A program made the position numbers and the translations under genes. From Obrimoposthia wandeli (Eukaryota), in assembly GCA_977020255.1 (NCBI GenBank), contig CDROCS010001386.1, positions 1 through 64,000 of the forward strand: DNA of 64,000 nt, read 5' to 3'. Under the pieces are notes generated by a model that had not been told where the DNA came from, searched no databases, and worked only from the letters and a program-made list of their open reading frames with translations. Shown here one piece after another: positions 1 to 57,985 of the stretch (position 1 is the first letter of the stretch; each line of letters begins with the position of its first letter).

Positions 1-250
1 TATTCCTGACCTGTCGAATGACATACAATTTCTGATCGATATTGTCAGTTGCTGACGTCTGCAGATGAATGTCTACTACGTGGTTTGTTTTTAGTAAAGA
101 GAATTTCTATGTATATTGCCCGTATTACGTCTTGTCTCCATTTACTGATCATGATCTCATAACTAGCCTTGGTAGTGGTGATTTGTACGATCAGCATGAT
201 TCCTATGATCGTTCGATTCTTAAACTCAGGAACTAATGAAACAAGTCAAA

Positions 251-1600
251 TTACTCATATAGTACGGTCTTTCCTCCAATATGTTCATATATCGTTGGCT
301 GGTACTCTGGTGCTGGTTCATCTAGAAATGGTAGATGCTTGGTATAATTGTGTTGAATTTTTGTAAATTCATTTGACCTGTTCGTCTTGCGAGATCATGA
401 CGTTTCTTTTTTGATCTCGACTCTATCTTTGAACAACAAAACAAGATGAGTAATATTAATATTATAAATCCAATGATCAATTAAGTATTGGATTAACAAT
501 TCTAGAATACCATAACGTACTGTAGTATTCCTTGCTCTTGATGGTTAATATTTTAAATTTGTGTGCACTTTGGTTGGACTTGTCACTGAGAAGCACTATT
601 TTAGTTTGTCCAAATATGTAGTCTTCACATGTGACAACACTAATTCCATAATGTCCACTAGAAGTGTTATCATTTCGGTCATGGGACTATACACATTCGT
701 CCTGGACATCCTTTTACACATGATCATCGGCTTTGCCTTCAGGATGTCTTGATTATTTCTAGGGTGTTGTCTAGATTTCTCAAATGTAAATTATATTCGG
801 ATAGTGTCATCAATTCGGCTTTACTGGTTGGCATGAAAACACGGTACCAATCAATTACTACTCCATAGATCAATCCTTGTGCAACGGTGCACAGGGCCTT
901 GACTGACCTTTTGCGAGGTTTTAATTATCAATCGTTTGAGAGATATCTGTTTCTGATTGGTTCGTTTTGTTGTCTGTCGTTGTTTTTGACATCTCCTCGA
1001 TTCCATCTCGTCCGATAATCAACTTCCTTTGGTTTACCTTGTATCGTCAACTTTCCGAATCCATTTTTGGCGGACAAGCATGTTTTATGTCCTTCCATTG
1101 TTTCAATTATCACTCTCTTACTTCCATACTCACGTGTTTTGATGACATCGCCAATGAATATATACGTTGGTCATATCAACATCTTTTTGTATTTCCTTTA
1201 CAACTCGTTTTCTCCGCTTGCATCCGGCGAATGTTGTTGATATTCGGTCAGAAGTGTGCTGTCGGTCAGCTTCGTAATCTATTCGGAATTGATTCAGTAT
1301 TCTGTTTGTGGGTAAAATATCGCTTCATTTACTATGTTGTCTTCGATCCTTTCGTCTGGAGTACACAAGCACTTTGTTTGTTGGTCCATTTGGTCTTTTC
1401 ATCTTTACAAACTGAAATCTTTTACTGTCGGTTCTCATAGATCGAAGACATTTTCGGATGATCCACACATCAATTAGTCCTAACAACACTAATAGCATCA
1501 TGTCGGTGCCGGCGTATGGTACTGTATGGTGTAGTTGTGGATTTCGTTGAACCAGGAACTATTTCCGTGGTTGGAGCCTATCTCCTGTGCTCCCGTTATT
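251..1600 (-). pseudogene. Frameshifted accessory membrane-protein coding region of the element
   Basis: Manual minus-strand translation gives LIIGFIILILLILFCCSKIESRSKKKR (480-400; TM helix, CC, basic stop-transfer). After a 1-nt shift it continues LDEPAPEYQPTIYEHIGGKTVLYE* (stop 251-253). A second hydrophobic stretch MMLLVLLGLIDVWIIRK lies near 1500-1450. The ORF at 928..1113 is another fragment. Confidence 0.45.
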
Positions 1601-1625
1601 GGCATTAAACAACTTAACAAGCCTA

Positions 1626-2263
1626 TCATGCTAGCAATCTTTGGTATTGAAAGCTGGGCACTGTTGTTGTAGCTTCATTTATTTCTCGTTGTTGCTTCCT
1701 CTTTTCGGTGTATTTTTCTATTTCTCGAACGAGTAACGGTTTGAATTCCGTATTCGGTCTATTCTGTTTGATGTAGACCATCGCTTCTTCTGGCGTGTGA
1801 CCATGGTACTCTACCAACAAGGATACACCTATGGTAGGCGCTAACATCGTACCTTTTTTCTGATATATCAGAACGCCGTTTCCTTCTGTGACTTCAGCTT
1901 GGATGGTTTGAGTCAATTTCGTCAGATGTTGTTGTGCATCGTTTATCTCTCTCGATTGGAAGCATGTATGTATCGAGTGGTGTCATCTTCAGTATTTTGA
2001 CACAGACTAATTATCTCGTTTCCGACTTCAACAATGTTGATTACCCGGTTGATACTGTGGAACTTTAATCCAGCAGTATCTATATCTCCTGGATGACATA
2101 AAAATACTTTTGGCATTATCTGTGTAATTTTGTCGACTCCGGCTAAAAATAACCCGGTCAACGATAATGCTTGGAGGAAATTCTTTTCCTTTGGATCCTC
2201 CGGAATGTCGTCCATCCGTCTTTGTTCTTGCAACAGAAGTTGATAATTTGCCAACTGTCCCAA
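1626..2263 (-). CDS. Second dual-specificity phosphatase-like domain, catalytically degenerate (pseudophosphatase); split by frameshift
   Basis: ITQIMPKVFLCHPGDI...INRVINIV and VLIYQKKGTMLAPTIGVSLLVEYHGHTPEEAMVYIKQNRP align to the DUSP pattern. The P-loop Cys and Arg of HCxxGxSRS are absent. Confidence 0.65.
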
Positions 2264-2267
2264 AAAA

Positions 2268-2650
2268 TTAAGATTTGGGTTTGCAATACTTCTTCTTCTT
2301 CTCCTGTAGGTATTTTAACGCTTCTAGTACCTGCATTCGTCTAGTCTTTATTAGATATGCTAATACTAGGGTTGCTGATCGAGAAATTCCTTTCTGACAA
2401 TGTACCAACACTTTTCCTTTGTTCCGGAGTTCTCTGTGAAGTATTTCGTTTGTTTCTACGAACCATTCGAGAAGATTAGCGTCCATTGAGTCTTTTACTC
2501 TTAATGTCATAGCTCTGATCGTCTGATATTATTGCGATTTGTGATTCATTGTAACGTTGATCACATATGTTATTCCTTGTTCCAACAGTTTCTTTTCATC
2601 TGTTGCATCCTCCACATTTCCGAGGTATAACTTACCTGGAATGATCTCAC
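2268..2650 (-). CDS. Dual-specificity protein phosphatase domain (intact active-site motif); split by frameshift at ~2520
   Basis: MSEIIPGKLYLGNVEDATDEKKLLEQGITYVINVT (ORF 2529..3401) is followed by VKDSMDANLLEWF...GKVLVHCQKGISRSATLVLAYLIKT (ORF 2268..2510), a canonical DUSP signature. Confidence 0.92.
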
Positions 2651-3860
2651 TCATTGGTGGCATTAATTCTGACTCTTCAAGTTTTAGTCTTTCTAACCTC
2701 TTCTCTATTTGTTCGTCGATGTTAGTTAGTTTCGCCAGTTTCTTTCCTCTCAGCATTCGTATTGCTGGAGAGATATTCATTTTTGTCTCTGATGTCTGTT
2801 CCTTTGTTGAGTCTTCTTCCGACTCGGTCTCCTCTGCAGATTTAATTCGTCTTTCTTGTATATTTTGTTTCACGAATTCTATGTTTTGTCTTTTTCTGCT
2901 TTCTTTAGCGAATTCAATCTCCATGGTTCTTCCGAATCGCTCTATTATGTTATCTTCGGATTCTGTTGATTCTGTATCGTTACTTTCCGGTTCGCTGTCT
3001 TCACTAGACTCGCTCGAAGGGTATTCTGGTATGTCTGTCTGAACTGAAATTAATGAAGGTGTTAGAATAATTGGATTGATTTCCCCTTCGTATTTGTGAA
3101 TCGGATACGGTATTACACTATCTTTAAGTATCTCAACTTGGAACTGTGCTCCATAGCACATGACAATTGTTTCCAATTTACCCATGATGGACAATCCATC
3201 AAAATAGGTAACATTCAGCTTAGATATCGGTGTCTTCGCATAATTAATTAAGTTTACTCTTTTCCGGTTGATGACGGCCATCGATTTTTGTAAAGTATAA
3301 TTTCGTCGTTTATCGATGTATGGCATTACACTTGGCGCGGACGATACTATTTCAGCATGATATTTTGGCTGAATTGAGTTGGTCACTTGTTCTCGGATCA
3401 TATTGATTCTTTGTGGCTTCTTATTTTTAGCTTCCCACTTCCGGTATCCGCTGTCAATGCGTAACTCTGCCGTTAACTTTGATGATTTTATTGTTAGTCA
3501 CTTCCGGATGGTTTGGCGAATGGAATCCCCCTTCTATTACGCTCAACCTTACAGATACTTCCGTTTGATCTGTCTCTAACCGGTGAGATTCTGGTATACA
3601 ACATACAATTGTTTTTCCATCAAAGTATTTAGTGTCCATCTGACAAATTATCTTTTCAGTGTCAGCGTCGATTAAATGGACTCTCATGATATCTCTTTTC
3701 CCATGTGAATTACGTAATACCATTGGCCATTACATCGTGAGTATTCTTGTTTGAGTCTTTTTGGCGTACCATGCAGTATGTGACCACCGGCCGGTTCCTT
3801 CTCTTCCTGGGTAGTCCTGCTTCAATTGCTGTCATAGTTCTGCCATGCAACTATGTTTGG
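2651..3860 (-). CDS. Unknown accessory polyprotein segment between integrase and DUSP (acidic Ser/Glu linker; possible divergent domains)
   Basis: ORFs 2529..3401 and 3454..3723 are co-oriented with, and adjoin, the neighbouring ORFs by small frame shifts. No confidently recognisable family. Confidence 0.5.
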
Positions 3861-3862
3861 TG

Positions 3863-5330
3863 TCAATGTGATTTCGTTATCACTTTCTCAGTTGTAAACA
3901 CATTGGAATTTTGATAAAGTGCTGCGACTAATGTATTTCCGTCGTAGTATAACACTCTAAGTTCGCACAGAAATTCGTTTTTGAGTGCATCTTGCACAAT
4001 GACTTCTTGATCCACATCTTTCGGTTGTGTTTTTTCTAAAACGACTATTATCTCTTCGTCTTCTTCTAATATCTCTTGTGGTGCGATGTGTCGGATTACT
4101 TCCTTTTCCTCTTGGTACTTCATTCTGAGCATACCAATTCTCGCTGATTTTTTCTCGCTACCACTCGTCATCATGTTTATGTAGTTCCGATCACTTACCA
4201 TTCGTGTAAGTTTAATGGTATTGGTATTTGGCTTCGATTTCTGTGATCTTAACTCATATCGTGACGCATTATCTTTATTTGGTACTAATTTGCATCGATT
4301 TGCATGTACAATCATCGGTTCCTTGTTCCGATTCTCTTCGTTGATTACTTTCAAATTTGTTGAAGTTGTCTGGATCACCTTGTATGGTCCTTTGTATGGT
4401 CTATGAAGTTTAAACGATAGACCTGGTTCGATGACTGGATAAAATATCATCCACTTGATCTCCGAAATAAATTCATGTGGTTTTGCTTTTTTTGTCGTAT
4501 TGTTCTTGTAACCTTCTTGATTGAATTTCAGCTTCAATCCGGCTTTGGTCCAAGCATCTTGTAACCTTTCCTTCATGACGACAATGTATTGTTCAGTTTC
4601 TAGGTACTGAGATGTTGGCTCGGTCCACTCCAGATCCATTGGCATATTGTTCTGTCTGAGATACATCAGATAGAATGGTGTGTGACCCGTCGCCTCTCGA
4701 ACTGAATTCCTGTAAGCATATAAACATGAAGGTAAATATTTATCCCAATCCTCTTGCTTGTCTGAGCAATAGGATTGTACCATCATACATAAAGTTTTTA
4801 TTAAACCTTTCTACCAGACCATCTGTCTGTGGGTGATATGGTGAAGTTTGTAACTTCATAATTCCGAATATCTTCGATACTGCTTTTATGACTTCTCCAG
4901 TGAAGTTCTTTCCTTGATCCGTTAACAACTTTCTAGGCACTCCGTATCGAAATATTATCTCTTCTACTAAGATTTGCGCTATTGTTTCAGCTTTCTGGTT
5001 CTGCATGGGATATGCTTCTACCCATCTCGTCATGTAATCCGTAAATACTATGACATACTTGTTTCCTTTACTTGATTCTCTCAATGGTCCCAATATATCC
5101 ATCGCTGTGAATTCCATTGGTGCCAAAGGAACTGGCATTGGTTTCAGTGGAACTTTAGTACGAGTTCAAGTGTCTTTTCTGGTTAAACATACTTTACATT
5201 GTTTACACCATTGTTTTTATGTCGTCTTCCATACCATCCCAATGGTTCTTCTCTTTGATTCTGGCTATCGTCTTTCGCCTGACAGATGTCCTCCCAGTGT
5301 TCCATCGTGATATTGGATCATCACTGCTGT
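3863..5330 (-). CDS. Integrase (HHCC, DDE core, GPY/F motif) with C-terminal extension; frameshifted
   Basis: YHDGTLGGHLSG...W...CKQCKVC lies at ~5310-5190. The core reads AMDILGP...TDQGKNF...YHPQTDGLVERFNK, followed by WDKYLPSCLYAYRNS...TPFYLMY and KLHRPYKGPYKV. Confidence 0.95.
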
Positions 5331-5510
5331 TTTCAATGACTTCGGAATTACTACTACTATCTTTCCGACATTATTGACAATATACAAGATTCCTTCTTTT
5401 TATCAGTATTTTTCGTCATTTCATCGTTTAGATCTCCTTTCACCAACAATTCTTTGATTAGACTCAGTTCTTCATCTTCTTTCTGTTCTTTGATGATCTC
5501 TTTGTCTATT

Positions 5511-6900
5511 TTACCCGTCTTTAGCAAAATCGTCAGTAGATTTTGCTTCTCCTTTTTGGTCATTGGTTTCATCTTCTTCTGGAATTATGTTTCCTTTCTC
5601 GTCTACATTTGTCAATCTCGATAAACAATCTGCGTTGCCATTCGACTTTCCGGTTCTATAACGGATTTCTAGATCGAATTCGGCCAATTTTAGAAACCAT
5701 CTGTTTAATCTACTCATCTCATCTCTATGTTTATATAAGAACTGTAGTGGTTTGTGATCTGTATACAGGAATACCTTTTGTCCTAGCAAATAGTGTCTGT
5801 ACTGTCTACATGAATACACTATGGCTAGACATTCCTTTTCGATAACAGAGTATCCTCTTTCGGCTCTGTTTAATCCTCTACTTGCATACGCAATGACGTG
5901 TTCTCTTCCTTCGTCATCCTCTTGTCCCAATACTGCTCCTACAGCATAGTTACTTGCATCTGTCATGAGTATGAATTGTCGGTTTATATCTGGAAACGCT
6001 AATATTGGTGCTTTTATCAATCTTTCTTTTAAATGCTCGAACGCTTGTTGAGCTTCTTCTCCCCATATGAACTTCTCATCTTTTCTCGTCAACTTTCTCA
6101 ATGGTGTTGCTATATCTGAAAAATGTTCAACAAATCGTCTATAATAATTCGCAAGACCTAAAAAACTCTGTATCTCCTTAACAGTCTTTGGCGCTAGATG
6201 CGCTTTTACTTTCTCGATCTTTGCTGGATCAGGTCGGATGCCTTCTTTCGATACTATATGTCCTAAAAATGTTACTCGCTCTTTAGCCCATTCGCATTTT
6301 GTAGGTTTAACTTTTAATTTAGCGTTTTCCAGTCTTTTAAATACAACTTCAAGATTTTTTAAATGTTCTTCGAACGTTTTCGAAAATATTATTATGTCAT
6401 CAATATAAACCATCGTGTTTGCACACGATGCGAGTACAAAATTCATGCAACGCTGAAATGTTGCTGGAGCTCCTGTCAGTCCGAATGGCATCTTTTTCGC
6501 ATTCGTATAATCCATCTCCGCAGGAAAAGGCTGTTTTGTGTTTATCCTCTTCCTCTATCTCGATTTGCCAGTATCCACTCTGCAAATCCAATGTCGTAAA
6601 ATAATCTGAATTACCCAATTTATCGAGCATCTCTTCGATTCTAGGTAATGGATACACATCTTTTCTTGTGATCTTGTTCAGTTCTCTGAAATCTATACAG
6701 AATCTCATTTTCCCATCCTTCTTTTTTTACCAACACCACAGGTGCTGAGAATGGCGAAAAACTCGGTCTAATTACTCCTGTTTTAGACATATCTTCGATC
6801 TGACTTTTTACTTCATCTTGTAATTGTAATGGTACTCGGTATGGTCTTCTTCTGACTACTTTGTCTTCTGTCAGTGGTATTGTGTGTTTTATGACAGGTG
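5511..6900 (-). CDS. Reverse transcriptase + RNase H; frameshifted at ~6725 and ~6500
   Basis: RFCIDFRELNK...YPLPRIEEML...LDLQSGYWQI, MPFGLTGAPATFQR, VYIDDIIIFS; RNase H TDASNYAVGAVL...EKECLAIV...TDHKPL. Confidence 0.97.
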
Positions 6901-6906
6901 TTTCTC

Positions 6907-7300
6907 CTATGTCATATGGATTTTTGCAATTACTTTTGGAAATTTATGTATTAGATCAAGTAATTGTTTCTTTTCTCTAGTTGTCAGTCTTTCTGATTGG
7001 ATTACTATTTCTTCGTAATCATTCGTATCTTTATCGAGTTTCATAGCGCATACAGTGGAATTCTCCATCTGTGCTATCTTTCCCAACCTCATTCCTCTGT
7101 ATAATAGAATGTCATTGTTGGTTGTATTCATCAGTCTAACTGGTATTTTGTGGTTTTCGATCAGACATACTGTACTCACAACTGGTAATTCGTATTTCTC
7201 TATGAAATCTCGTGATGGTTCGAACACAACTGGTCCTTTATCTTCTGATAATGTGTGACCTTGAATGAAATTGTGATCTTTTACCGATTTTTATAGGATT
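6907..7300 (-). CDS. PR-RT spacer region of Gypsy pol
   Basis: IPVRLMNTTNNDILLYRGMRLGKI resembles the spacer commonly seen upstream of RT in invertebrate Gypsy pol. It is linked to both neighbours by 1-nt shifts. Confidence 0.6.
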
Positions 7301-7313
7301 CTCTATAATTACA

Positions 7314-9377
7314 TCAATTTGGTTTTATTTGTCTGTTTGATGTACTATCCTTCAATCTTGGATCTTGTAAATCAATGCTTATCCCTTTAAGTTGTGATAG
7401 TACATCCATTCCTAAAATTGTAGGTTCAGGACATTCTTTCATGATTCTAACTGGTATAGTGATCGTATTACGTCCAATTATAAATGTACATGGTAATATT
7501 CCCGTCACTTTTACAGGGTCTCCATTGACCGATACCAAGAATTCATCTGGTTCTGCCATTGTTCGTTTCTGTTCCTCTGTCAAACAGTCTTCACTTACTA
7601 TCGAAGCTACAGCACCTGTATCAATTAAAGCTTTTACTCGTAAATTATTTACTCTAATGATAGCTGCTGGTCGCTGTGCTCCATTTATGTTTCCCATATG
7701 GTATATTGTATTTATCGAATTATTACACTCTGTCCGTCCACTTCCTATGTTTGGATAGTGAAATCTAATGTTTCTCACTTGTCGATCTATTATTCTTCGA
7801 CAAATCGGACATGATACCATTTCATTCGCACATCTCCGACATGTTCTTACATGTCCGCATGGTAGAAAGGCAACTTCTATTTTGTTGACCATGCAAACTG
7901 CGCATTCCGGATCTTCTAGTATGTATTCTAGTTCATTTATGTACTCTTTCTCTTTTGTTTCAATTGTACTGTCATCTTTATCTCGCAGTAATTCAAAAAT
8001 CGATCCGTATCCGTTTCGCGTAGTTTTTATTTTTAATTCTACCAATTCTCTGATTCTTTCTGCTTCTTTTGGATATAATCTTCTCACGAATGACACTACC
8101 GGTGTGTCTTGTTGAGCCAAAATCTCTTTCCGTGTGATTTGGTATTCGATTATACATTCGGTTTTCTGTTCCTTTTGCTTTATTTTGTTTTTTAAAGTAC
8201 AAAATTCGCAAAATTCATGATGTAAAATTTTCTTAGGTAGCTCAAGAGTGTATCTGTCGATAATTCGTTCTTTTTTACACTTGTGGCATTTAATTACGTC
8301 TTTACTTTTTGCCAATTTTTTAAGTCTTGGATCTTCGAAAGTTACTTCTCGATACTGTTCGTCACATTCGTTCACTTCTCGCATAACTTCGAATATATCT
8401 TCAATTCGACTATTCGTTATTACTCTACCTGTTATTAGAGCTGATTCTCCTTTTGGAATCCCGTCACTGTAATCGAAATCGGGTGCTTTTCCCATTTGGA
8501 TTTCTGGTACGTTTGACGTTTTCAGTTTCAAAAGAAATGGACAATTTGGTGCATCTCTTTTATGACGTCTCATTGGGTTTTCATTCTGTTCCCATTCTCT
8601 AAACTTTACTCTACACCATACGCATCGTACTACTATCTCCTGACCATAACTGCTTGTCGCGTTTAACATTTCTAAACCTGATCTTGCCATTTTACGTGCC
8701 ATTCCTTTTGAATAGTACTGTTCTAGTATGTTTCGTCTCTTTCTCTCGAATCTCATGGGATCCCTTTCTGACAGATTTACATATGTTATTTTTCTCCTCG
8801 TCGTATCTTGTGGTCCGAAATTTACATTTTTGTAGTGAAGTATCGACTTTGCTAGCGCTTCCTGTTTTTTGTCTGGGTACGAACTTCCCATACGGAACGT
8901 AGTGCATTTTTCCTTTTCGACTATAGGTCCTCTCAACATTTTTATCTCTCTCACTGAACTGTCATTCTTATTACTCTTGTTGTTTGGTAGTATAATTATT
9001 CCTTCAAACATTCGTATTACGTCCATCCCAATCATGACTGGACTACCGCAATCTGTGAATATTCTAGCATTCAACTGCAATGCTCTTCCATCGATATTCA
9101 ATGAACATTTTAGTGTTCCTTCCGACACTACATCTGTACCATTCACGTTAACAAATGTCTGTTTTCTAGGACATACTTCTCTTAATTCTTTTGATGACAA
9201 GATTTCTTTACTCAGTACTGATACTGCAGATCCGGTATCAACTTCGGCAAGATATTCTCTTCCGTTCAATGTTACTGCTACTTGTGGTGGAGCATTTGGA
9301 TTCTCATTGGATATCCTAGACTTCAGAATTCTTCTGGAATTATCTTTTTGTCTTTTCCTCTGCTTGTGGAATCTCAC
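7314..9377 (-). CDS. Aspartyl protease 1 - BIR - degenerate BIR - RING (IAP module) - aspartyl protease 2
   Basis: PR1: LAEVDTGSAVSVL...MIGMDVI. BIR1: CVWC-x16-H-x6-C (CVWCRVKFREWEQNENPMRRHKRDAPNCPFL). BIR2-like: TF..LA..DVIKCHKC-x18-H-x6-C. RING: CAVCMVNKIEVAFLPCGHVRTCRRCANEMVSCPICR. PR2: ALIDTGAVASIV...ILGMDVL. Confidence 0.92.
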   Translation of the reverse strand: MRFHKQRKRQKDNSRRILKSRISNENPNAPPQVAVTLNGREYLAEVDTGSAVSVLSKEILSSKELREVCPRKQTFVNVNGTDVVSEGTLKCSLNIDGRALQLNARIFTDCGSPVMIGMDVIRMFEGIIILPNNKSNKNDSSVREIKMLRGPIVEKEKCTTFRMGSSYPDKKQEALAKSILHYKNVNFGPQDTTRRKITYVNLSERDPMRFERKRRNILEQYYSKGMARKMARSGLEMLNATSSYGQEIVVRCVWCRVKFREWEQNENPMRRHKRDAPNCPFLLKLKTSNVPEIQMGKAPDFDYSDGIPKGESALITGRVITNSRIEDIFEVMREVNECDEQYREVTFEDPRLKKLAKSKDVIKCHKCKKERIIDRYTLELPKKILHHEFCEFCTLKNKIKQKEQKTECIIEYQITRKEILAQQDTPVVSFVRRLYPKEAERIRELVELKIKTTRNGYGSIFELLRDKDDSTIETKEKEYINELEYILEDPECAVCMVNKIEVAFLPCGHVRTCRRCANEMVSCPICRRIIDRQVRNIRFHYPNIGSGRTECNNSINTIYHMGNINGAQRPAAIIRVNNLRVKALIDTGAVASIVSEDCLTEEQKRTMAEPDEFLVSVNGDPVKVTGILPCTFIIGRNTITIPVRIMKECPEPTILGMDVLSQLKGISIDLQDPRLKDSTSNRQIKPN

Positions 9378-11504
9378 TGTAGCTCACTTTAGGCCATCTT
9401 ATCATTAAGATGCCTCTCTTGAACTTTTCCTTCTCTTCCTTTAATTCCTTCATTGGATATAGGTTTAACGCCACTTCTTCCTTGTCTGGTAACGGAATCT
9501 TCGGTTTTCCTGGTATCTTTGCATATACTCCTGGACTATCATTATCGTCGTCGTTATCGTCTCGATAGTTTCTTGGTTCTCTCATCATGGTTCTCGTTTG
9601 GTGTTGTTCCTTCTTGAGGGCTCGCAACTCGTTCTCGTGATGATGGTGCATTAGATATTTTGCTAAAAATGGAAAACATCCAATTATAAGTTGCCAGGTG
9701 ATTCCGGTTATCCTGTATAAACTATACGTAGACAACACCTGGGCTATAATTACCTGCACAAATTTAATTATAACATAAATACCTATGATACCCGAAAATA
9801 ATTGTCCTAAGACAAGGAATTTCCCCCACATCTTTCTAAGTGTCTGATGTGCTGCTTCCTTGAAATGACTTGGCGATAATAACATATCGAAATTCGCATA
9901 TCTCGCTCCTGGCGGTAATGCTCGATGTACCATCTCCGTAAGTACTCTGGCTCTTCTTACTGGAAACATTATTTCGTTCCACGCCGCTTTTAAATCTTTT
10001 TCATTGTACAATCCTGCGCTCTCCATATTTTCCACCGCTTGGAATTTCATTTTACCTTTAAGATTCGTCATTCTTATCATCGCTGGGGTTTTCGTTGCCT
10101 TCCGATCAGGTAACGTTATCCATAGATTATTCGTCATCTGATATTCAGGTGCCATTATATTAGAGCAGCTGATTTCTTTAGTTGGAGTGTCTTTTGGAAG
10201 TAACATTCTCGTGATTGGTTCAACAAAAAGATCTTTTAGATTATACGTTACTGCCAATTCACTCGTACATCGATTTGTTTTTCTCAACTGTACCTCTACT
10301 TTATTACACTTGTAAGTATACAATACTTCTCCCATGGTTTTAGCAAATACTCCTTCATCCAAGGGTAATAATGGTGCTACCATGTCTGGATTCGTAATAG
10401 CTAATGCTAACTTTGTTCTTACGATCTCTTTGTTTAGCTGGCAATCTCTTTCGATCATCATTCGATATAACTGTTCCATTTGCATCAATCCTTTATGATA
10501 ATAGAAATCAATTTTATTATTAAAATACGTGTGTAGCTGCATATCTTTAGGTTTTAGCTTGGTTTCTGCCAATGCTATTGCTTCTTTAGACAAAACTATT
10601 CCTGGATAGTTTGTAGTACTAACAGTCATTCCGCATCGCGCTTTGTTTCTCTTTTTAATAAATATCAATCCTTCTTCTATTGATGTTGCCATTAACAGTG
10701 TAGGTGTTTTTGTCATTGGGATTGGTCTTGTTTCATTTAACAATCCTTTTCCTGCTTTATTATACAGGAACCCTTCTCCATCCTTATTATACAGGAATCC
10801 TTTTATTTTATTAAAGCTAATCTCTTTCAAAAATACTAAAGAGCATTGCTTCGGATTTATGTTATACACAATTGTGGATTCACCTGTAAAACAAGATGCA
10901 TCTGTCATTTTACATTCTGGATACTTCATCATTAGTTGTGTCTTTTTATCAAAATTGGCGGTCCATGTTTTTAATTCGATTTTGTAAGTTACATCCATTA
11001 CTAACTCAGATACTTTGGTTCCACGCACGTTTTTTGTTTCTCCGTCACAAGATCCATCAGCCCATCGTTGTCCGACTCTCGTGACTGTTTCGTATCGTCT
11101 CACTCCAATTTGTACTTCAGGTTTGTAATTCTTGTCTACCTCTATCGTTCCGTTCGAAATGCATCTTCGCAATCTCTCGGCAAAACCTTATGTGCCTTGT
11201 ACGGTGTGGTAGGTGTGATTTCTGACATAAAACTTCTATGACCACAATAGAATTCGTGATAACTTGAATGGATTGAACATTCTTTCACTTCTACTTGTAC
11301 TTTATCAACATCCTGATACACAAAGTAGTTTTCAACACCTTGAACTTCTAGTTTTGACGGTTGTGATTCTGGGCAGTCTTCGCTGTCAAGCAGTGAATAC
11401 TTTTGTCCCATCTTTGGTATGCTACAGTCATATGCTATCAATCCTGATGCCTGTTGCATTCCCATAAACATTACTAACATCATCATCATCATTGTTGTGG
11501 ACAT
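9340..11504 (-). CDS. Envelope glycoprotein, chuvirus/Jingchuvirales-like (class III fusion-type); N-terminus encoded at the end of the gag ORF
   Basis: Signal peptide MSTTMMMMMLVMFMGMQQASG then LIAYDC...SLLDSEDC. A 1-nt shift at ~11150 joins the 610-aa ORF containing YFNNKIDFYY...DCQLNKEIV...GEVLYTYKCNKVEV...CTSELAV..LFVEPITRML and a C-terminal hydrophobic region. Confidence 0.8.
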
Positions 11505-14500
11505 ATTTGGTTGATTGTTTCTCTCTTTCGGACGGTATTGTTTATTTTCTCTTTGACGATTCTCATGACATTGTTCGTCATCGTCTTCGTTCATTTCCAC
11601 AATGGTTTTAGCGTAGTCACTTAATTTTGCCCAACCTCCGTTTTCGTCAATTCGTCTCTGTAATACATTCTCGATCAAATACATCGCTTCATTTATTCCT
11701 TGTTTGACTTCGTGAGGTTGGCTCGTTCGTTCCGTCAATTGGAAACATAGATATGTGATCGCTGTAATTAACTTTTTATTTGTAGTCTGGTTTCCACATA
11801 ATCTCGCTAAAACTTCACCGTCATAAAATCTATCTATCGATGCATGGTATACATGATTCGCGGTCATTCTCTTTACTGCAGACATCTGTGATCTAACTGC
11901 TTTAGTCAAATTGTCTGTTATATCGGTTGTTTCATCTCTGTACATTTTAAACAACTTCGGCTTCACTTGCCTGAGAATTCCCGTAAGTATATCTTTACTA
12001 CTTGGAGTTTCCGAATTCATATCACCTCTGATATCTTCATTCCTCTCTGCACTATACTGCTCTAATGACGCTGCTAACTGTCCAATACTTAGATGTCTCT
12101 CTTCATCAGTTTGTGGTGCTGTTAGAACATTTCGTAATATACTTTCGCCTTTTCTAGGTCTTCCAGGTCCTCTTCGAAAATACTGATACTCAGCTTGATT
12201 CTCTCCTGGATCATACGTTTCACCATTATACTGTATCTCTTGACTTGGTCCTTCTTCATGGCCAATCTCTTCATTTTGTCGCATCATTTGCTCTGCTTGT
12301 CTATCTTTGTATGCGGCATGCCAAATTGGTGAATCCAAATCTACAATCTCGGAGACTTCGTCTTCTCCTACTAGTTGGGTTACGGTTTCGTTTTGTCTCA
12401 CTTGGTTAGCTGTATCCGTGACTTCATCTTGTCTGATTGGAATTATATCTGGTTCTGGTGGCACCTCGACCACTGGAGTTGTCAACTCATTTTCTAAATT
12501 CATGTCTTGTAATTCAGCTACGTACGGTTCTGGTGTGGATGTCTTGTTCCAAGCTTCAGCTACATCATTATCTCCGCTTTCACTTGAACTGTCTAAAATT
12601 TCTATAGGCGTTTTTATCATTTCTAACGCAGAATTCAATATCTCGGTTAATCCTTCATTATCTACTAACTCTTGACGTCCTACAGTGATGACATCAATTT
12701 TTTCCTCTAATTCATTTCCTATCGGATATCCAAACTCGACTGGTACGTCCTCATCATCTAGTGATCTCACTTTATAATGGAACAACATATTCATTCCATC
12801 AATTTCAAGTTTCTCAGCCAAGTTTTTCCGAATCGTTTTCATTGTTTGATACACGTTAAGTTTTTCATGTATTATCTGTCCGGAAATTAATCGAAGTGAA
12901 ATTTTCATCGTTCCTTTTTGGTTTGATCTCTGTACATAACGACCATAACCTTTCAGTAATCCTCGGGGTACTTCTTTGTAACCCAAGTTATCATGACTAT
13001 GTTTAACCAATTCTGCACGCACTTCTTCCAATCGGTGCACTTTAATTGTTTGCAATTTGGCCAAAACTTCTGGAGCTTCACTCGTTTCATCTAACGGTTG
13101 ATTTAACGTCTCCTTAGCTTCACTAATTATCTTTTTTACATTTTCCATACTCGTAGCATTTCTTGCTGCTTCTACATGATCAGTCATAGGTTGTGCGTTA
13201 CACGTTTTCTCTATTGGTGTCTCATACGCTTCTAATATTCTATTCATTAAATCATTCATCTCTTCTCTCGAATGTGGACTTCTCTCTTGTTTCGACAACG
13301 TAGATGAATTCGCCATCTTTGTATGTGGTGAATCTTTAATTATTCCCAACATTCGTTCAAATTTACTATCACTATCCTCAAAATCTATTTCGCGTCGCAG
13401 CTCGGTTTCGCGATTCCTATCACTGTCATCGCTTACATAACTAAAATTTCCTTTCGGTTTCGGCGAACTCTCTCGACTATTTGTCTTGTCGACATTATTA
13501 TTATTATATCTACCAGAATTATTATATCTCTCAGCTCCTTGCTGTCCTACGTAATTATTGTATCTCTCAGCTCCTTGCTGTCTGTCTGCATAGTTATTGT
13601 ATCTACCTGGTGACTGTTGTCTATCTGTATACTGATTATTCAGTCTCCATGGCTGTGGAGTATATCCACCACCTCTATTCCATGGCGGAGGTGAATTATA
13701 TCCTCTATAATTATTTCCAAAATTATTATTACCGAAATTATTATTTCCAAATCTGTTAGTTCCGAACTCTTTACTTCTCGTACAATCTCTCGAATAGTGA
13801 CCCATTTGTTTACACGTGTAACACATTATTCTCCCTCGAATATCTATCTTATTTTGTTCATCTTCGAACTGTACTCGACGACTATTCTGTCTATTATCAT
13901 AGCGTCCTCTAAAATCATTTCTTCGGAAATTCGATTCAAAACCGCTTCCTCGATTATTGAATCTTCCGTCACTATTTCCTGCATTATTTCCAAATCGAGA
14001 GTCACTTCGCTCTCCTCTGTTTGCATTATAATTCCTATCGTCTCCTCTCCAAGGTTGGCGATTTCCTGAATTATCTCTATTAAATCTATTCCTGGAATCA
14101 TCTCTATTTCTATTCCACGAATCATTATTATTTCTACCTCTTGAATCATCTCGATTCCTGTTCCAAGACTCACTATTATTTCTACCTCTCGAATCATCTC
14201 GATTCCTACTTCGGAAATTATCTCTATTTCCGTTACTGGATTCATCTACTTTTTCAAACTTATTTTGTCCATAATTTCGATTCTGAAAATTACTCGGTTC
14301 TGTTTTATTCACGAAGACCTTTGTCTTATCGTCGTCACCTGCAGTCATTGCGTAGATTGCCAATGCTGCGTTATTTTTTATATTTTTCTCAATCTCTCTC
14401 GCCTTTCGTACGGCGTTATCAAAATCATTTGTATCCGATACTGCTAATAACACTTTAATATCCTTTTTCAATCCTCCTCTAAATATATCTAACAAGACCT

Positions 14501-15396
14501 CTGCCATTTCATTTTGGTTCCGGTCATTTTCCGCTGCTTGTGCTTCTGGAGCTACAGGATTACCGTCCTGATTTCTCATTATTCTTCTTGGGTACGCTCT
14601 TGCGGCCAAGGTTCTCAAAACATACGCGTATTCATTCACGCCTTCATCATGTTTCTGTTTCCGTTCTCTCATGAGTCGCTTATTTACTTTGGCTAAGTCT
14701 CCTAATACCAATTTTCCAATAAAAGCATTTTCCAACGTTGGCCAGTCTAAACGTTCTGCTTCTGTCAAATGTTTATACACTTCAAGTGCTAATCCGGTTA
14801 AATGTGCCTGTACTCTGACACATTTTTCTTTATCGTTCCATCCTTGAACATCTGCACAACTCGAATATTCTGCGAGGAAGTCACAAATACTTTCCTCATC
14901 TCCTTTAAACTTTGTAATCTGCAATGATCCTGAAAAATTGGGTCTCAACGTCGCATTTAAAGCTTGTGCCAACTGCTCGGCATTCATGTCACCTACATTA
15001 TTTCCTGCATTATTTTCTGCTTGAGCTCCTGGTTGAGCCATATTTTCAACTATAACTTCTTCAACTATTTCTTCAATATTATTCAATGGAACTTCCTCAA
15101 TCACTACTGGATTGGCAATTTCAAATTCTTCTTGGTCTATGTCACCAAATAATTCAGTCAAATTAAAACTGCCGGTTGAAACCGCTGATTGATCAACGTC
15201 TCTTTCTGATACGTTTTCTTCGACTCTAGTCTTTTCTGTTACTTTGTTATCTGTTTGGGGAACCTGTTCAATTCGGTTAACTTTATTATTATTTATCTCT
15301 TCCTTGGGAATCTGACTTTGTCTTCTAGTATTATACGCGGGTCCTTTTCTATTATCCGTTGTCTTATCAATTATGTATTCGTTTACGATATCAATT
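11142..15396 (-). CDS. Extended Gag polyprotein: capsid, R/N/D-rich repeats, CCHC knuckle, ubiquitin-like domain, AT-hook, Bcl-2-like domain, Env signal peptide
   Basis: Capsid-like FKGDEESICDFL...GWNDKEKC...LTGLALEVY...RKQKHDEGVNEYAYVLRTLA; CYTCKQMGHYSRDC at 13782-13824. The reading frame is open upstream of the listed start to a stop at ~15397. Confidence 0.88.
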
Positions 15397-15494: not shown

Positions 15495-16235
15495 TAATTA
15501 CTTCGAGTATCAATCCACTCGATTCTCACTTATCAAATTTACTGGCTCGAGGAACAAATCCACTCGACTTCTCAAAACCTATCAAACTCTTAACTTCGAG
15601 GAACAAATCTACCCGATTTCTCAAAAACTTATCAAATTCTTAACTTCGAGGAACAAATCTACCCGATTTCTCAACACTTATCAAATTCTTAACTTCGAGG
15701 AACAAATCTACCCGATTTCTTAAAAACTTATCAAATTCTTAACTTCGAGGAACAAATCTACCCGATTTCTCAACACTTATCAAATTCTTAACTTCGAGGA
15801 ACAAATCTACTCGATTTCTCAAAAACTTATCAAATTCTTAACTTCGAGGAACAAATCTACCCGATTTCTCAACACTTATCAAATTCTTAACTTCGAGGAA
15901 CAAATCTACCCGATTTCTCAACACTTATCAAATTCTTAACTTCGAGGAACAAATCTACTCGATTTCTCAAAAACTTATCAAATTCTTAACTTCGAGGAAC
16001 AAATCTACCCGATTTCTCAACACTTATCAAATTCTTAACTTCGAGGAACAAATCTACCCGATTTCTCAACACTTATCAAATTCTTAACTTCGAGGAACAA
16101 ATCTACTCGATTTCTCAAAAACTTATCAAATTCTTAACTTCGAGGAACAAATCTACCCGATTTCTCAACACTTATCAAATTCTTAACTTCGAGGAACAAA
16201 TCTACCCGATTTCTCAACACTTATCAAATTCTTAT
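15495..16235. repeat. Tandem array, 49-50 bp unit, ~15 copies, in the element's 5' leader
   Basis: Unit CACTTATCAAATTCTTAACTTCGAGGAACAAATCTACCCGATTTCTCAA, with period 49 measured at 15661/15710. Confidence 0.95.
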
Positions 16236-16289
16236 CTCAATTTACTTATATCTTCTTCTGAACTTATTCTCAATTGTCTATATTCTTCT

Positions 16290-16590
16290 GCTGAAACTTA
16301 TTCTCAATTTATCTGAAACTTATTCTCAATTTATCTGAAACTTATTCTCAATATCTGAAACTTATTCTTAATACCTGAAACTTATTCTTAATATCTGAAA
16401 CTTATTCTCAATATCTGAAACTTATTCTTAATATCTGTACTTATTCTCAATATCTGAAACTTATTCTTAATATCTGTACTTATTCTATTTACCTGAAACT
16501 TATTCTCAATTATCCGCAACTTATCTGAACTTATTCTATTCACCTGAAACTTATTCTCAATTATCCAAAACTTATCTGAACTTATTCTAC
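16290..16590. repeat. Tandem array, ~19-20 bp unit, in 5' leader
   Basis: Repeated CTGAAACTTATTCTCAAT(A/T) variants. Confidence 0.85.
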
Positions 16591-17048: not shown

Positions 17049-17642
17049 AAAACTTTATTTTATCTTGGACAAACTTTAGATTATCAATACGCAATGAAGG
17101 GTAAAATCTTCTTTTAGATCGGATAAAACTTTATTTTATCTTGGGCAAACTTTAAATTGTCAATACGCAATGGAGGGTAAAATCTTCTTTTAAATCGGAT
17201 AAAACTTTATTTTATCTTGGGCAAACTTTAAATTGTCAATACGCAATGGAGGGTAAAATCTTCTTTTAAATCGGATAAAACTTTATTTTATCTTGGGCAA
17301 ACTTTAAATTGTCAATACGCAATGGAGGGTAAAATCTTCTTTTAAATAGGATAAAACTTTATTTTATCTTGGGCAAACTTTAAATTGTCAATATGCAATG
17401 CAGGGTAAAATCTTCTTTTAATCGGAAAAACTCTTTAAATTATCAATACGAAATGCAGGGCAAAATCCTCTTTTAATCGGAAAAACTCTTTAAATTATCA
17501 ATACGAAATGCAGGGCAAAATCCTCTTTTAATCGGAAAAACTCTTTAAATTATCAATACGAAATGCAGGGCAAAATCCTCTTTTAATCGGAAAAACTCTT
17601 TAAATTATCAATACGAAATGCAGGGCAAAATCCTCTTTTAAT
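17049..17642. repeat. LTR tandem arrays: 76-bp unit x~5 grading into related 55-bp unit x4
   Basis: Periods 17201/17277 and 17421/17476/17531/17586. Confidence 0.9.
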
Positions 17643-19192
17643 CTTTACTCAATAAAGGCCAAACTTCCTTAAATTTTCGGTCTTTATACCTTTATTTTCT
17701 CCGAAATCACTGGATCCTCGTCTCCTAGTATAGTCTGCTCGAGTTGGCGAGATCAGGAAATAGATTGAAATTAAATAGACTGGAGATAACTGGGAATTTG
17801 CTGCCTTGTGGTCTATTCCTCGGTAGATCGCGATATTGATTTTTCCGGTTGTAATTTCTTTTTCTTATCGACGACTTTTATAGTCGATTCTACAACTCCT
17901 GTCTGTCAGTCAGCAATGTCGACAGCGGTTTCACTGGAGTCTTTTGCGGCAGCTGAAAATTAATTTTAACACTCCAAATTAACTGCACGAAAATGTGCTT
18001 ACCTTGATTGACGGTTTGATTGACGTTGCTAATTTTCTTTTTCGACTATAATTAATTCTAATGTTTCCTTTTGCTTTTTTGCACTTTTAGTTGATTAATT
18101 CTAACTTTTATACACATTTCACACTATACACGACCTTCGTGGTCCTCCTAATTTTTACCCTAAATTCCACTAATTTTAATTCTAAAACTTAAATTAATAT
18201 TTTAATTTAATTTTCAACCTTGCTTTCAAGGATTTTTATTTTAGTATTTAATTTACTAAAATATTTAATTTTCTTAATTCTCAACCTTAACAAATTAGCC
18301 TAATAGATTTTGGCTCAAAAAAACTTACATTGAGGAATTGTTGAGACGTCTGGCAGTTGGCCGGTTCTCACAGTTTCTCACAGAGTTAAGTGGTTGCAGA
18401 ACAGGTGGCGAATTCCCACAATATTTTTCTGATTTTCTTCTTGTTTTCTTCTTCTTAATTATTGACTCTAATAATTGGAATTCTTTGGGCCCTTTTAATA
18501 ATTTTAAAATCTCTTATATATACCTACACAAGAAACATGACTCTTCAAGGTCTTAAATTTATTCAATCCCATTTTATTTAATTTAACATTTTTTAGTTAT
18601 TTATTTCACTTTCTTTAACCTTACTTTTAGGGTTATATTTTCTATATATATTAATTAAATTCAAAATCCTAATCCTAACACCTTTATTAATTCAATTTTA
18701 TCAAATTTAATTCGTATATAGATGTTATATCTATTGAAATTGTTAGGTTTAGGAATTAGAAAATTAAAATAATTAGTTGATTTTATACTAAAATAAAAAT
18801 CCTTGAAAGCAAGGTTGAAAATTAAATTAAATATTAATTTTGAAATTCAAAACTAAAATTATTGAAATTAAGATAAATATTAGGAGGACCACGAAGGTCG
18901 TGTATAGTGTGTGGTATATAAGGTTAGAATTAATTACTAGTAAAGTGCAAAAAAAGTGAACAATATAGAAAACTGCCAACGTCAGCAGAAAAAAGAAAAA
19001 CCACTAACGTCAGCAGAAACGAAAAGGTAATTAATTAAACATCTGCCAATTTCTGATATTTATGGAATCAGTTGAAATTGACAGAAGCAAAAAACCCAGG
19101 GCGCAACAAGGATCGGTCGAAGCAGCAACCGGAGCAGCAACAGGCAGGTGGTAATTTAGTGGTAGTGCTCGGTTTTAATCGATTATTTAGAT

Positions 19193-19488
19193 CACAATCA
19201 AAGTCGACTGTGCAGATTATTTGAAAAAGACATTTAATTGGAAAACCCAACGACAATCAAAGTCGACTGTGCAGATTATTTGAAAAAGACATTTAATTGG
19301 AAAACCCAACGACAATCAAAGTCGACTGTGCAGATTATTTGAAAAAGACATTTAATTGGAAAACCCAACGACAATCAAAGTCGACTGTGCAGATTATTTG
19401 AAAAAGACATTTAATTGGAAAACCCAACGACAATCAAAGTCAACTGTGCAGATTATTGGAAAAGACATTTAATTGGAAAACCCAACGA
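19193..19488. repeat. LTR tandem array, 59-bp unit x5
   Basis: Unit ACAATCAAAGTCGACTGTGCAGATTATTTGAAAAAGACATTTAATTGGAAAACCCAACG. Confidence 0.95.
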
Positions 19489-19562
19489 CTAGAAAAATCC
19501 ATCTAATTACCAAGCAGCGGATTCAGTGCCGGACTCTACCCACAGTTACGGATAGGTGAGAC

Positions 19563-20055
19563 GTCTCGCATAAATTCATTGTCCGAAGTTGACAATTAGG
19601 TTTTAACAATTTTAACTTGTCTCGCATAAATTCATTGTCCGAAGTTGACAATTAGGTTTTAACAATTTTAACTTGTCTCGCATAAATTCATTGTCCGAAG
19701 TTGACAATTAGGTTTTAACAATTTTAACTTGTCTCGCATAAATTCATTGTCCGAAGTTGACAATTAGGTTTTAACAATTTTAACTTGTCTCGCATAAATT
19801 CATTGTCCGAAGTTGACAATTAGGTTTTAACAATTTTAACTTGTCTCGCATAAATTCATTGTCCGAAGTTGACAATTAGGTTTTAACAATTTTAACTTGT
19901 CTCGCATAAATTCATTGTCCGAAGTTGACAATTAGGTTTTAACAATTTTAACTTGTCTCGCATAAATTCATTGTCCGAAGTTGACAATTAGGTTCTAACA
20001 ATTTTAACTTGTCTCGCATAATTTCATTCATTGTCCGAAGTTGACAATTAGGTTC
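19563..20055. repeat. LTR tandem array, 56-bp unit x~8.5
   Basis: Unit GTCTCGCATAAATTCATTGTCCGAAGTTGACAATTAGGTTTTAACAATTTTAACTT. Confidence 0.95.
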
Positions 20056-22594: not shown

Positions 22595-25500
22595 CTGGCC
22601 ACGGAATATTTTATCATTACATTAATACCATAAAAAAGGAATACTTTATCATTCCTTTTCCTCTATATTATCTTCGCAAATTTCCATCAAATTTACTTGA
22701 GTAAAACAGATTTAGATATTAACAAAATGAACAGTTCATATATCGTATCTAATTGGGAATTTAGTGACCAAATTGTTGTATGCGGGTATTAAGTTCTCGT
22801 AAAGAAAATTGAGGTATTTATCTTCATAAATGATACGGATATATGGTTTAACTCATGTCAACTTTTCATATTCACATTTAATGTTGATTTATGGTGACAG
22901 CAAAATCCAAATCCGATCGGTTGAATACCTTGTAACAAAGTCAACAATATAAGTTATTCAAGCATTAATAAATTTTGAACCTGTTTTCAAAAACAATTCA
23001 TATTGGCAGTTTTGTATGTAATATTAAATAGTTTCAGAAATTTTAACACAGCCAATTTTTTTACTATTATTCTAATGATTTAATTTCAACTACCATATCA
23101 ATAAAAAACAATTGGAAACATGCCTTAGAATAATTTTTTTGTAAATATTGTACTTTTAAATATTAACTAATTTCATGAAAATTATTTTTTAAATGAATTT
23201 TAGAACACTACCAAATTAAAAAAGTCAAATTATTCAAATACTAAAAGCAATAGTTAATAAACTTTAAAAATAATTGCTTTAAAATCATCAACCTAGAAAT
23301 TTTGGCAGACACATTTACAATGGAATAAATGGCCAAGAAAAGCAAATCAAGCTATTTGTATAAGAACTAAGGCATTAGCAAAAATAAAAATAAAAAATAA
23401 ATGTTTTAAAAATAAAATATATTATATTAAATTTTATATAATTGTCTTACGTTTGTACAAGCAACAAATGATCGAGCATTGACTTTTATCAGATTCAATA
23501 TTTTTTTGGAAACGGGATTTCATATAATGACTTATTTAGAAATATTCATCTAGATTCTAGAAGGTGAAACATTTATTGCAAAAGCTTCAGTTTCTAGTCA
23601 AAAATTGGTATGTAAAAGCTACTATAGAAAAAAATCGTCTATATACCGTTTCATGAAAGAAATAAAGGTTGAAGTCACCATTAAGCATTAAAAGATATAA
23701 AATTGTTTGGATAAACCATCAGTTCATGAAAGTAAGCTTGTTCATAAAACCCAGCGGTTTGAATATTTAGAGAGAGAAAGAGAGCTGTTTGATTAAAATT
23801 CAATTGTTCTAAATTTGTTCAGGTTGTATTTCCACTTACTGGAACAGTTCTCAGCTGCACTTAACAGCTGTTTCACTTGTCAATTATCACATGGATATTT
23901 GTTATGGTTAAACGCCAGTTGGAATACAAAGAAGGGCATCTGAAATATGGATTTACAGCCAAAGAACGGTGCCTGAGTTTTCCGCCCGTGTGGATTGCAA
24001 TGTTTACACGTAAAAAAAGAACCACTTTGATTTTCAACATGATCTTTGATATGATCTTTGACATGCTCTCAGTTTGAATTTTAAACCACGATTAAGTGAA
24101 CTGATAAGCACCATGAAACAAGCCACTGAAAACACGATTGTATCGTTTTCATGAAATCACTGGATTTAAATACGAAACGTTTTTATTATTTGTTATTGTC
24201 TATTAAATAAATTTCCATGGTCGCTGTGGAAACAAATTGCAGATTGACAGTGATATATAAATAGTAATTAAAACAATAAAAATTGTTCTTGAACTTGTGT
24301 AACATCATGGGAAAGCAGTTGCATTGCTTGAAATTGTGAATGTGCGAATGAGTGACTCACAAGAGGTGGCTCCTGGCGCTGCTTGCGGCGACGGTGGTGG
24401 GGGCATCATTTTAGTTGGCAGCTTGGAGGGCGGCTTGACCATCTTGACTTGCTGCACAGTGGTCGTGGTGGTCGTGGTCGTGACGGAGCTGCGCCGTCTG
24501 TCTTCACCAGTCACTTCCCATTTAACGGAGCGCTGCCGATTGCGCAGGAAGATGCGGGAGCCGCGGTCCTGACCATTGTGCAGTGCCGACGCCAGCCTGA
24601 AGCATAGCTCCGGCCCGATGGAGTTGTGCTCGACACGAGGCGCTCGCTTCACTCGCTCCAGGAACTCTAGCAGAGTGCGAGGTGCCCCTGGTGGTGGCGG
24701 AGGTGGAGGCGGAGGAGGCTGGTGGCGCCAGTCAGAGGCGGTGCTTGGCAGACCCGGGAATCCAAGTGGCGGGAAGGGGGGCGGCGGTGGTGGATGCATC
24801 AGCAGCTCATCAGCAGATGGCAGCAGCGACTGTGGTAAACGAAGAAATCATTATGGAAATTAATTAATTTAATAAGTTAATTAATTTTTATGCTACCAGG
24901 TATCCATCACAAACTCTCAGTCTCTAGTATTTCCATTTAGTATATGAAGTACCAATGAGTATATCCGGACATACTCCAGGGGGTAAAACTCGCTTGATGG
25001 CACAGATATGGACCCTGAAACCTTTGAATCGCACCAAAGACAACTAAAAATCTGTATTTAGAGAATGGCAGATAAATACTAGATGCCCTCAAAGATGAGT
25101 CATTTGAGGTCACATATGGCCTCACCTAGTATATGAGGCCACTTATATCCAATTTTCTTGAGTACGATTTGCAAATATTTCAAGGGATTTTGAAAGTCCC
25201 AAGTCAAAATCACGACTCTTATACATGGTGAGGGATATCCTAGTCTAAAGCAGCTTAACGTGCCGCGAGATTTATGTTGACTCTACCTTATCTATTTTAT
25301 CTATATCTAATGAATCTTTGATTTATTCCTCAAAAGCGTTTCCTCTTTTCCATTATTCTATAATAAAGTATTCAGCTGCTTTTTGAATTTTTCAACATTG
25401 TTTCATATATTCATCGGTAATTTATTGTAAAAAATTCGGGGTATAGAATTCAAAAATTCAAACACTCTGTTTGTTATTTGAGAATTTCTTAACCAATTTG

Positions 25501-57591: not shown

Positions 57592-57985
57592 GATATATGT
57601 CACAGACTAGCTTGGCGATGTACGGATGTCTCGCTCTCATATATGTCACAGACTAGCTTGGCGATGTACGGATGTCTCGCTCTCATATATGTCACAGACT
57701 AGCTCTGCGATGTACGGATGTCTCGCTCTCATATATGTCACAGACTAGCTTGGCGATGTACGGATGTCTCGCTCTCATATATGTCACAGACTAGCTCTGC
57801 GATGTATGGATGTCTCGCTCTCATATATGTCACAGACTAGCTTGGCGATATACGAATGTCTCGCTTTCAAATATATGTCACAGACTAGCTTGGCGATGTG
57901 CGAATGTCTCGTTCTCATATATGTCACAGACTAGCTTGGGTGATGGGCGAATGTCTCGCTCTCGTGTATATCACTGACTACCTCG
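57592..57985. repeat. 46-bp tandem array inside left Polinton TIR (~9 copies; ~4 copies in right TIR)
   Basis: Unit ATATATGTCACAGACTAGCTTGGCGATGTACGGATGTCTCGCTCTC, period 57601/57647. Confidence 0.92.

Follow-up and report, generated by a model that had tools for sequence, protein, structure and literature searches.

A virus-like retroelement fills roughly the first 15-16 kb of a 64,000-nucleotide stretch of Obrimoposthia wandeli DNA (GenBank assembly GCA_977020255.1, contig CDROCS010001386.1, positions 1 to 64,000; this whole stretch is referred to here as the window), and it encodes on the minus strand, between its Gag-like part and its envelope protein (Env), a domain (11601..12002, minus strand) that we consider quite probably to be a strongly diverged member of the Bcl-2 family, conserved in the family of elements to which the window copy belongs. 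This is a diverged Bcl-2-like domain, not a canonical family member, and it is tied to the Bcl-2 family because it is homologous to the corresponding domain of a metagenomic relative (L002), which significantly matches both the Pfam family PF00452 and Bcl-xL. In the window copy the domain runs without interruption, as residues 1054-1187 of a long frame shared with Gag. A preliminary description of the window, made from its sequence alone, had quoted four peptides resembling Bcl-2 homology (BH) motifs, and all four were located on the minus strand within a single frame, at 11613-12002 (BH4-like, 11964-12002; BH3-like, 11865-11909; BH1-like, 11736-11801; BH2-like, 11613-11684). It had also described the domain as fused into Gag directly before the Env signal peptide. 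The domain does lie in the same frame as Gag (start at 15161), but some 600 residues beyond the zinc knuckle (~600), in the spacer and outside Gag proper, whilst its position just before the Env signal peptide was borne out, the gap after the BH2-like peptide being 36 residues compared with the ~30 first proposed.

Conservation of the domain in related elements

A search with the env protein identified two relatives (L001 and L002) in an ENA metagenome assembly and a search with an env alignment (A1) three further relatives (L003-L005) in a JGI metagenome, whilst scans of viral contigs and prokaryotic genomes with the env alignment found none. The window env is ~40% identical to the env of L001-L005, and the window reverse transcriptase (RT) ~60% identical to the RT of L002-L004 (tblastn). 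Two of these relatives carry gag, spacer, env and pol in a single stop-free frame, L003 at 2-10279 (plus strand, 3426 codons) and L004 at 97-11205 (plus strand, 3703 codons); in both, Env is bounded by an internal signal peptide ahead of it and by its own transmembrane segment, with protease-RT-integrase behind, and both single frames have an additional C-terminal part that includes a hydrophobic segment. Running in frame from Gag to Env is accordingly a family property and no accident of the window copy. The possibility that the Gag fusion is an artefact of a degraded window copy was rejected, as L003 and L004 carry the same fusion in one long frame.

When the long frame of the window was used in tblastn, similarity to L002, L003, L004 and L005 extended from env upstream, past the signal peptide and into the domain. 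A direct comparison of the window domain with the L002 protein upstream of env gave nothing, most of the L002 domain being in the env frame. The domain segments of the relatives were each taken from a single frame, unjoined, so that the L002 segment comprises the C-terminal 105 residues only. In local alignments between the window domain and the L002-L005 domains, z values were 8.5-13.2 (L002, 13.2; L005, 12.8), with none of 1000 shuffles reaching the observed score; identity to the window was only 17-20%. The five sequences were combined into a domain family alignment and profile (A2), and into a trimmed version of it (A3).

The preliminary description had itself named conservation of its NGGW motif among relatives as a test, and the motif is retained: the Trp of GGW is present in all five sequences and the GG in four, D-E replacing GG in one relative. 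A Tyr in the hydrophobic helix before GGW is likewise invariant (5/5, A3) and the spacing from this helix to GGW is constant across the family (A3), whilst the N-terminal helices are loosely conserved among the relatives, without a family signature. In A2 the domain is followed in four of the five sequences by an acidic linker whose length varies, the L005 segment stopping before it, and segments equivalent to the window signal peptide are found in L002, L003 and L004. The position of the domain recurs in the relatives, with 30-50 residues separating it from Env's internal signal peptide. A short chance motif as the sole signal was considered and rejected, the likeness being conserved and spanning ~65 residues. 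Judged from these alignments, the domain is a conserved module of the element family and not peculiar to the window copy.

Similarity to the Bcl-2 family

The strongest single match is that of the L002 domain, which hit PF00452 at E 6.2e-5 and 3.3e-5 (23.9 bits; whole Pfam library). The L005 domain matched the same family at E 0.025 (15.6 bits), and the window domain at E 0.036-0.1 (13.6-15.0 bits), where plainly spurious families appeared at similar E values. Similarity to the family is thus reached through the homologue L002, and the Bcl-2 likeness read from the window sequence alone is at noise level, a motif-level resemblance. All three matches fall on profile positions 35/36-100, that is, from BH1 through BH2, which in the window (profile positions 35-100) corresponds to a core at 11631-11819 (minus strand), and, apart from PF00452 (three of five members), no Pfam family is matched by two or more of them.

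Comparison with structures in the PDB gave a similar picture. The L002 domain alone retrieved chains of Bcl-xL and Bcl-2 by the dozen (E 0.001-0.03), in an alignment of ~67 residues that starts at the end of helix 4, takes in BH1, the central helices and BH2, and has two small gaps; the sole entry above Bcl-xL in this list was a designed repeat protein that summed nine weak repeats. The best match of profile A2 was Bcl-xL (E 0.016), ahead of Bcl-2 and fowlpox FPV039 (E 0.11), and the best PDB match of L005 was the sponge Bcl-2 homologue BHP2 (E 0.48). The GGW turn of BH2 is present, and HMMER aligned this block without gaps to the BH2 of Bcl-xL and Bcl-2. The BH3 and BH4 assignments of the preliminary description found no such support: the Pfam match starts at profile position 35 of 100, and there was no match to a BH4 family.

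With cellular Bcl-xL and Bcl-2 the element domain shares the BH1-to-BH2 spacing, a hydrophobic central helix and the BH2 GGW turn. In cellular Bcl-2 proteins a hydrophobic segment follows, as it does in the element 30-50 residues later. The element domain differs from its cellular counterparts in being part of a polyprotein and not free-standing, in having lost NWGR, in its undetected BH3 and BH4, and in that its 'anchor' is the signal peptide of the following protein. It probably derives from multi-domain Bcl-2 proteins. Viral Bcl-2 homologues such as fowlpox FPV039 and vaccinia/variola F1L are likewise strongly diverged with degenerate BH motifs; DNA viruses encode these as genes of their own, however, whereas the element version forms one domain of the Gag-Env-Pol polyprotein in a reverse-transcribing element. 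Large DNA viruses (herpes-, pox-, asfar- and adenoviruses) characteristically carry Bcl-2 homologues, and a limited literature search found no report of one in a retrovirus or long terminal repeat (LTR) retroelement.

Evidence against a Bcl-2 assignment

Several results weigh against this assignment, beginning with those obtained from the window domain on its own. Three cuts of it searched against the PDB with phmmer returned no Bcl-2 chain; the lists were headed by a stathmin-like domain, NSL1 and designed repeats, and the stathmin-like chain matched the BH2-like motif of the window better than any Bcl-2 chain did. A phmmer search of the window domain against 1.84 billion representative proteins gave no matches. 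The Bcl-2 fold packs 7-8 helices about a central hydrophobic hairpin. Two AlphaFold models built from single sequences were all-helical with six to seven helices (6-7), at pLDDT 39.7 and 42.2 too poor to use, and no confident three-dimensional model of the domain was obtained from single sequences. Foldseek searches with both of these low-pLDDT models gave nothing at E < 0.7, and the two result sets were inconsistent: one model had nine Bcl-2-family chains, F1L chains among them, in its top 50 at non-significant values (E 2.7-5.4, TM 0.2-0.33), whilst the other drew four-helix bundles of the FAT-domain type.

Within the family, Pfam reported no Bcl-2 match for the L003 and L004 domains, no member reached the Pfam gathering score of 31.4 bits, and the PF00452 model was matched over its C-terminal two thirds only. 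With the trimmed profile A3, designed helical-repeat proteins outranked Bcl-2 chains in the PDB. The preliminary description had remarked that NWGR of BH1 is not conserved, which holds for the window and the relatives alike: W, G and R are all unconserved in the aligned columns, the Arg column is occupied by Lys in three of the five sequences, and two of the five have D-G two columns earlier. Many diverged anti-apoptotic viral Bcl-2 proteins also lack NWGR.

Other searches with the domain were negative within their respective scopes: a word-indexed search with the domain region (0 matches), tblastn against phages and pattern scans of viral and metagenome contigs. An exact look-up of ten open reading frames (ORFs) of the window in a sequence collection found none of them present.

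Alternative explanations

An element-specific helical spacer module without Bcl-2 ancestry, for instance a cytosolic leader that couples Gag to Env, could have come to resemble Bcl-2 by chance or convergence upon an amphipathic helix followed by GGW. The leader peptide of foamy-virus Env does couple Gag to Env, and a place beside Env suits a role in assembly. With this explanation agree the position of every Bcl-2 score under the curated Pfam cut-off, the missing Bcl-2 matches of L003 and L004, the designed helical repeats that score as well as Bcl-2 chains against A3, the stathmin-like chain that matches the window motif, the absent NWGR and the likeness of the second AlphaFold model to four-helix bundles. 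We nevertheless regard it as unlikely. The L002 values of E 3.3e-5 in the Pfam library and ~1e-3 in the PDB would hardly arise by chance; the match is nearly ungapped over ~65 residues from BH1 to BH2 and so reaches beyond a motif; three mutually different members, only 17-24% identical to the window, match one and the same family over identical profile positions; and the natural proteins in the PDB match lists belong almost purely to the Bcl-2 family.

If the fold is a true Bcl-2 fold, its job may still be other than death control of the Bax/Bak type. Bcl-2-like proteins of poxviruses that block innate-immune signalling are known, and the element domain might do the same, or might serve as a membrane-targeting or assembly module for the Gag-spacer product. 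Canonical members hold BH3 helices with the G and R of NWGR, and neither residue is kept here; no BH3 or BH4 signature was detected, and the domain sits at the Gag/Env junction. Against this stand the many anti-apoptotic viral Bcl-2 proteins that lack the same motifs, and an IAP-like module in the window element (described below) that points to cell death as the target, and we judge a different job to be somewhat unlikely. A pro-death, pore-forming member resembling Bax or Bak, which could for example aid particle release or spread, appears highly improbable: PF00452 does span pro-survival and pro-death members, and the excess of Bcl-xL and Bcl-2 among the PDB matches partly reflects the number of deposited chains, but Bax and Bak are not among the best matches, which are Bcl-xL, Bcl-2, FPV039 and BHP2, and the IAP-like module would act in the opposite direction.

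Proposed topology and function

We return to the diverged Bcl-2 homologue. The reading in which it is a conserved module of envelope-carrying gag-env-pol Ty3/gypsy-like elements is in our estimation likely; in this reading it would be tail-anchored via the Env signal peptide and may modulate host cell death. The domain is joined by a charged linker of 32 residues (11505..11600, minus strand, in translation) to a hydrophobic segment (11442..11504, minus strand) that is the internal signal peptide of Env and the candidate membrane anchor. That this segment is Env's own signal peptide follows because the Monjiviricetes_fusion profile is matched from position 4, at the N-terminus of the Env protein itself, at 11442-11504. 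Its hydrophobic run is ~12 residues long, and a small-residue site of the cleavage type immediately precedes the conserved start of mature Env.

According to this proposal, signal peptidase would cut after the Env signal peptide, and the upstream product, now ending in a hydrophobic segment, would be held on the cytosolic side of the endoplasmic reticulum (ER), tail-anchored in the manner of cellular Bcl-2 proteins. Gag, spacer and Pol would be cytosolic, with the Env ectodomain inside the ER lumen, and the element protease may free the domain from Gag. So anchored, the domain would modulate host cell death, most plausibly by delaying death during expression of the element. The order in the one-frame relatives L003 and L004 (signal peptide, Env ectodomain, transmembrane segment, protease-RT-integrase) is topologically coherent. 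A point against the anchor is the signal peptide's hydrophobic run, which at ~12 residues is shorter than a typical tail anchor.

The use of a signal peptide as an anchor is inferred by analogy. The capsid anchor of flaviviruses is a comparable arrangement. As PMC5402940 describes, the core protein of hepatitis C virus is held in the ER membrane by the E1 signal peptide after signal-peptidase cleavage. The polyprotein layout of core/E1 is the same as that of the element, an analogy of layout only, with no sequence relation found. As to the direction of the effect, the presence of the IAP-like module in the window element makes a pro-survival role the simplest guess, and the lost BH1 residues leave room for a non-canonical role. 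More tentatively, we consider it quite possible that the Bcl-2 homologue, tail-anchored via the Env signal peptide, predates the divergence of the known members, and that the window lineage added the IAP module (BIR and RING) in pol and perhaps a phosphatase.

Were these readings correct, invertebrate reverse-transcribing elements would also capture and keep regulators of cell death, and a Bcl-2-like domain would be deliverable within a Gag-Env-Pol polyprotein, where an internal signal peptide may double as its membrane anchor. The domain would represent a new, very diverged branch for asking which features a minimal Bcl-2 fold requires, and attention would be drawn to the Gag-Env spacer and the slot between the proteases as sites of host-gene uptake. 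With Bcl-2 and IAP together, and perhaps the phosphatase, a retroelement would possess a cell-death toolkit of several parts, of a kind hitherto known from large DNA viruses.

Layout and state of the element in the window

From 15161 downwards the minus strand reads Gag-like part, CCHC zinc knuckle, spacer, Bcl-2-like domain, hydrophobic segment, env, pol and phosphatase domain, so that gag, a class III env and a Ty3/gypsy-type pol follow in this order on one strand. The Gag-like part of the long frame (13779..15161) ends with the zinc knuckle (13779-13823; Pfam zf-CCHC, E 8.1e-6) and is similar to the gag regions of L002, L004 and L005 (tblastn), the L002 ORF that matches the window Gag having a weak Ty3_capsid match. 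Between the capsid-like part of Gag and the knuckle lie N/R/G/D-rich low-complexity near-repeats (13800-14250, minus strand), and a 48-nt tandem repeat occurs at 14095-14208. The Gag-Env spacer (12003..13778, minus strand) contains N/R/G-rich low-complexity repeats. Shortly before the Bcl-2-like domain, at ~12100-13004, it also has a weak signal of the ubiquitin-like/UBX type (E 0.037) and a GRP motif resembling an AT hook. The counterpart protein of L002 (6922-9042, plus strand) matched ubiquitin at E 0.0034 and AT_hook at E 0.027, and the window and L002 spacers give a weak collinear alignment that spans the AT hook.

The product of env (9340..11504, minus strand) is a fusion glycoprotein of class III and chuvirus type that has a transmembrane segment and tail of its own; its two pieces match PF24664 (Monjiviricetes_fusion) at E 5e-77 and E 9e-13. 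One frame change interrupts env, and another lies at the env/protease junction. Pol, from protease to integrase, is spread over at least six ORF pieces (3863..9377, minus strand) in the order protease, BIR, RING and protease (one ORF), then RT, RNase H and integrase, the RT-RNase H-integrase part being split into several pieces by frame changes and in-frame stops. The frame of Gag, spacer and Bcl-2-like domain is uninterrupted. The window copy is thus a fossil of the design, with the domain uninterrupted and env and pol broken.

A GAG-ENV-POL order has been described for errantivirus-like Ty3/gypsy elements of Nematoda, Bryozoa and Platyhelminthes in a study that makes no mention of Bcl-2, BIR or apoptosis (PMC13524379). 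The window element has the same gag-env-pol order, class III (gB/chuvirus-like) envelope and Ty3/gypsy-type pol as those elements, and differs from them in a spacer with a Bcl-2-like domain and a pol with BIR and RING.

No long direct repeat pair that could represent LTRs was found in 1-26000, a result that is uninformative as the element probably runs past the left edge of the window. A second copy of the element was not found within the window, and an Rfam search of the window found nothing. Directly upstream of gag are arrays of tandem repeats (15547-16589, 17049-17643 and 19194-20054; units of 20-76 nt, 87-98% matches), which may belong to the 5' non-coding region or the LTR of the element.

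Other modules and neighbouring features

The IAP-like module, a BIR followed by a C-terminal RING, lies in one frame (7314-9377, minus strand) between two retroviral-type aspartyl protease domains (9018-9281 and 7392-7658, minus strand). The BIR (8532-8702, minus strand) was detected at E 6e-9, with the NAIP BIR at E 4e-11 and the DIAP1 BIR at E 5e-8, and the RING (7782-7913, minus strand) at E 5.9e-12, with the PDB cIAP1 RING at E 7.8e-16. Because this module is present, the window element has taken up cell-death regulators. In tblastn the protease-BIR-RING ORF matched L001-L004 in its protease parts alone, and the BIR and RING module appears to be absent from these four relatives; L002 has ankyrin repeats in the inter-protease slot that holds BIR and RING in the window. 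A search with the protease-BIR-RING ORF gave nothing above threshold among 8000 candidates.

Downstream of the integrase is the catalytic domain of a dual-specificity protein phosphatase (1626-3401, minus strand; DSPc, E 9.4e-22), in pieces and with a possible second, weaker copy. No counterpart was found in L001-L005 (tblastn), and the phosphatase may be part of the element or a neighbouring host gene.

Beyond the element, a proline-rich ORF of 164 codons without a Pfam match (24305-24799, minus strand) lies in a GC peak of 0.39 compared with ~0.28 around it and may be a host exon. Two 46-nt tandem arrays (57593-57980 and 62470-62625), ~4.5 kb apart and with mutually reverse-complement units, may be the inverted ends of another mobile element.

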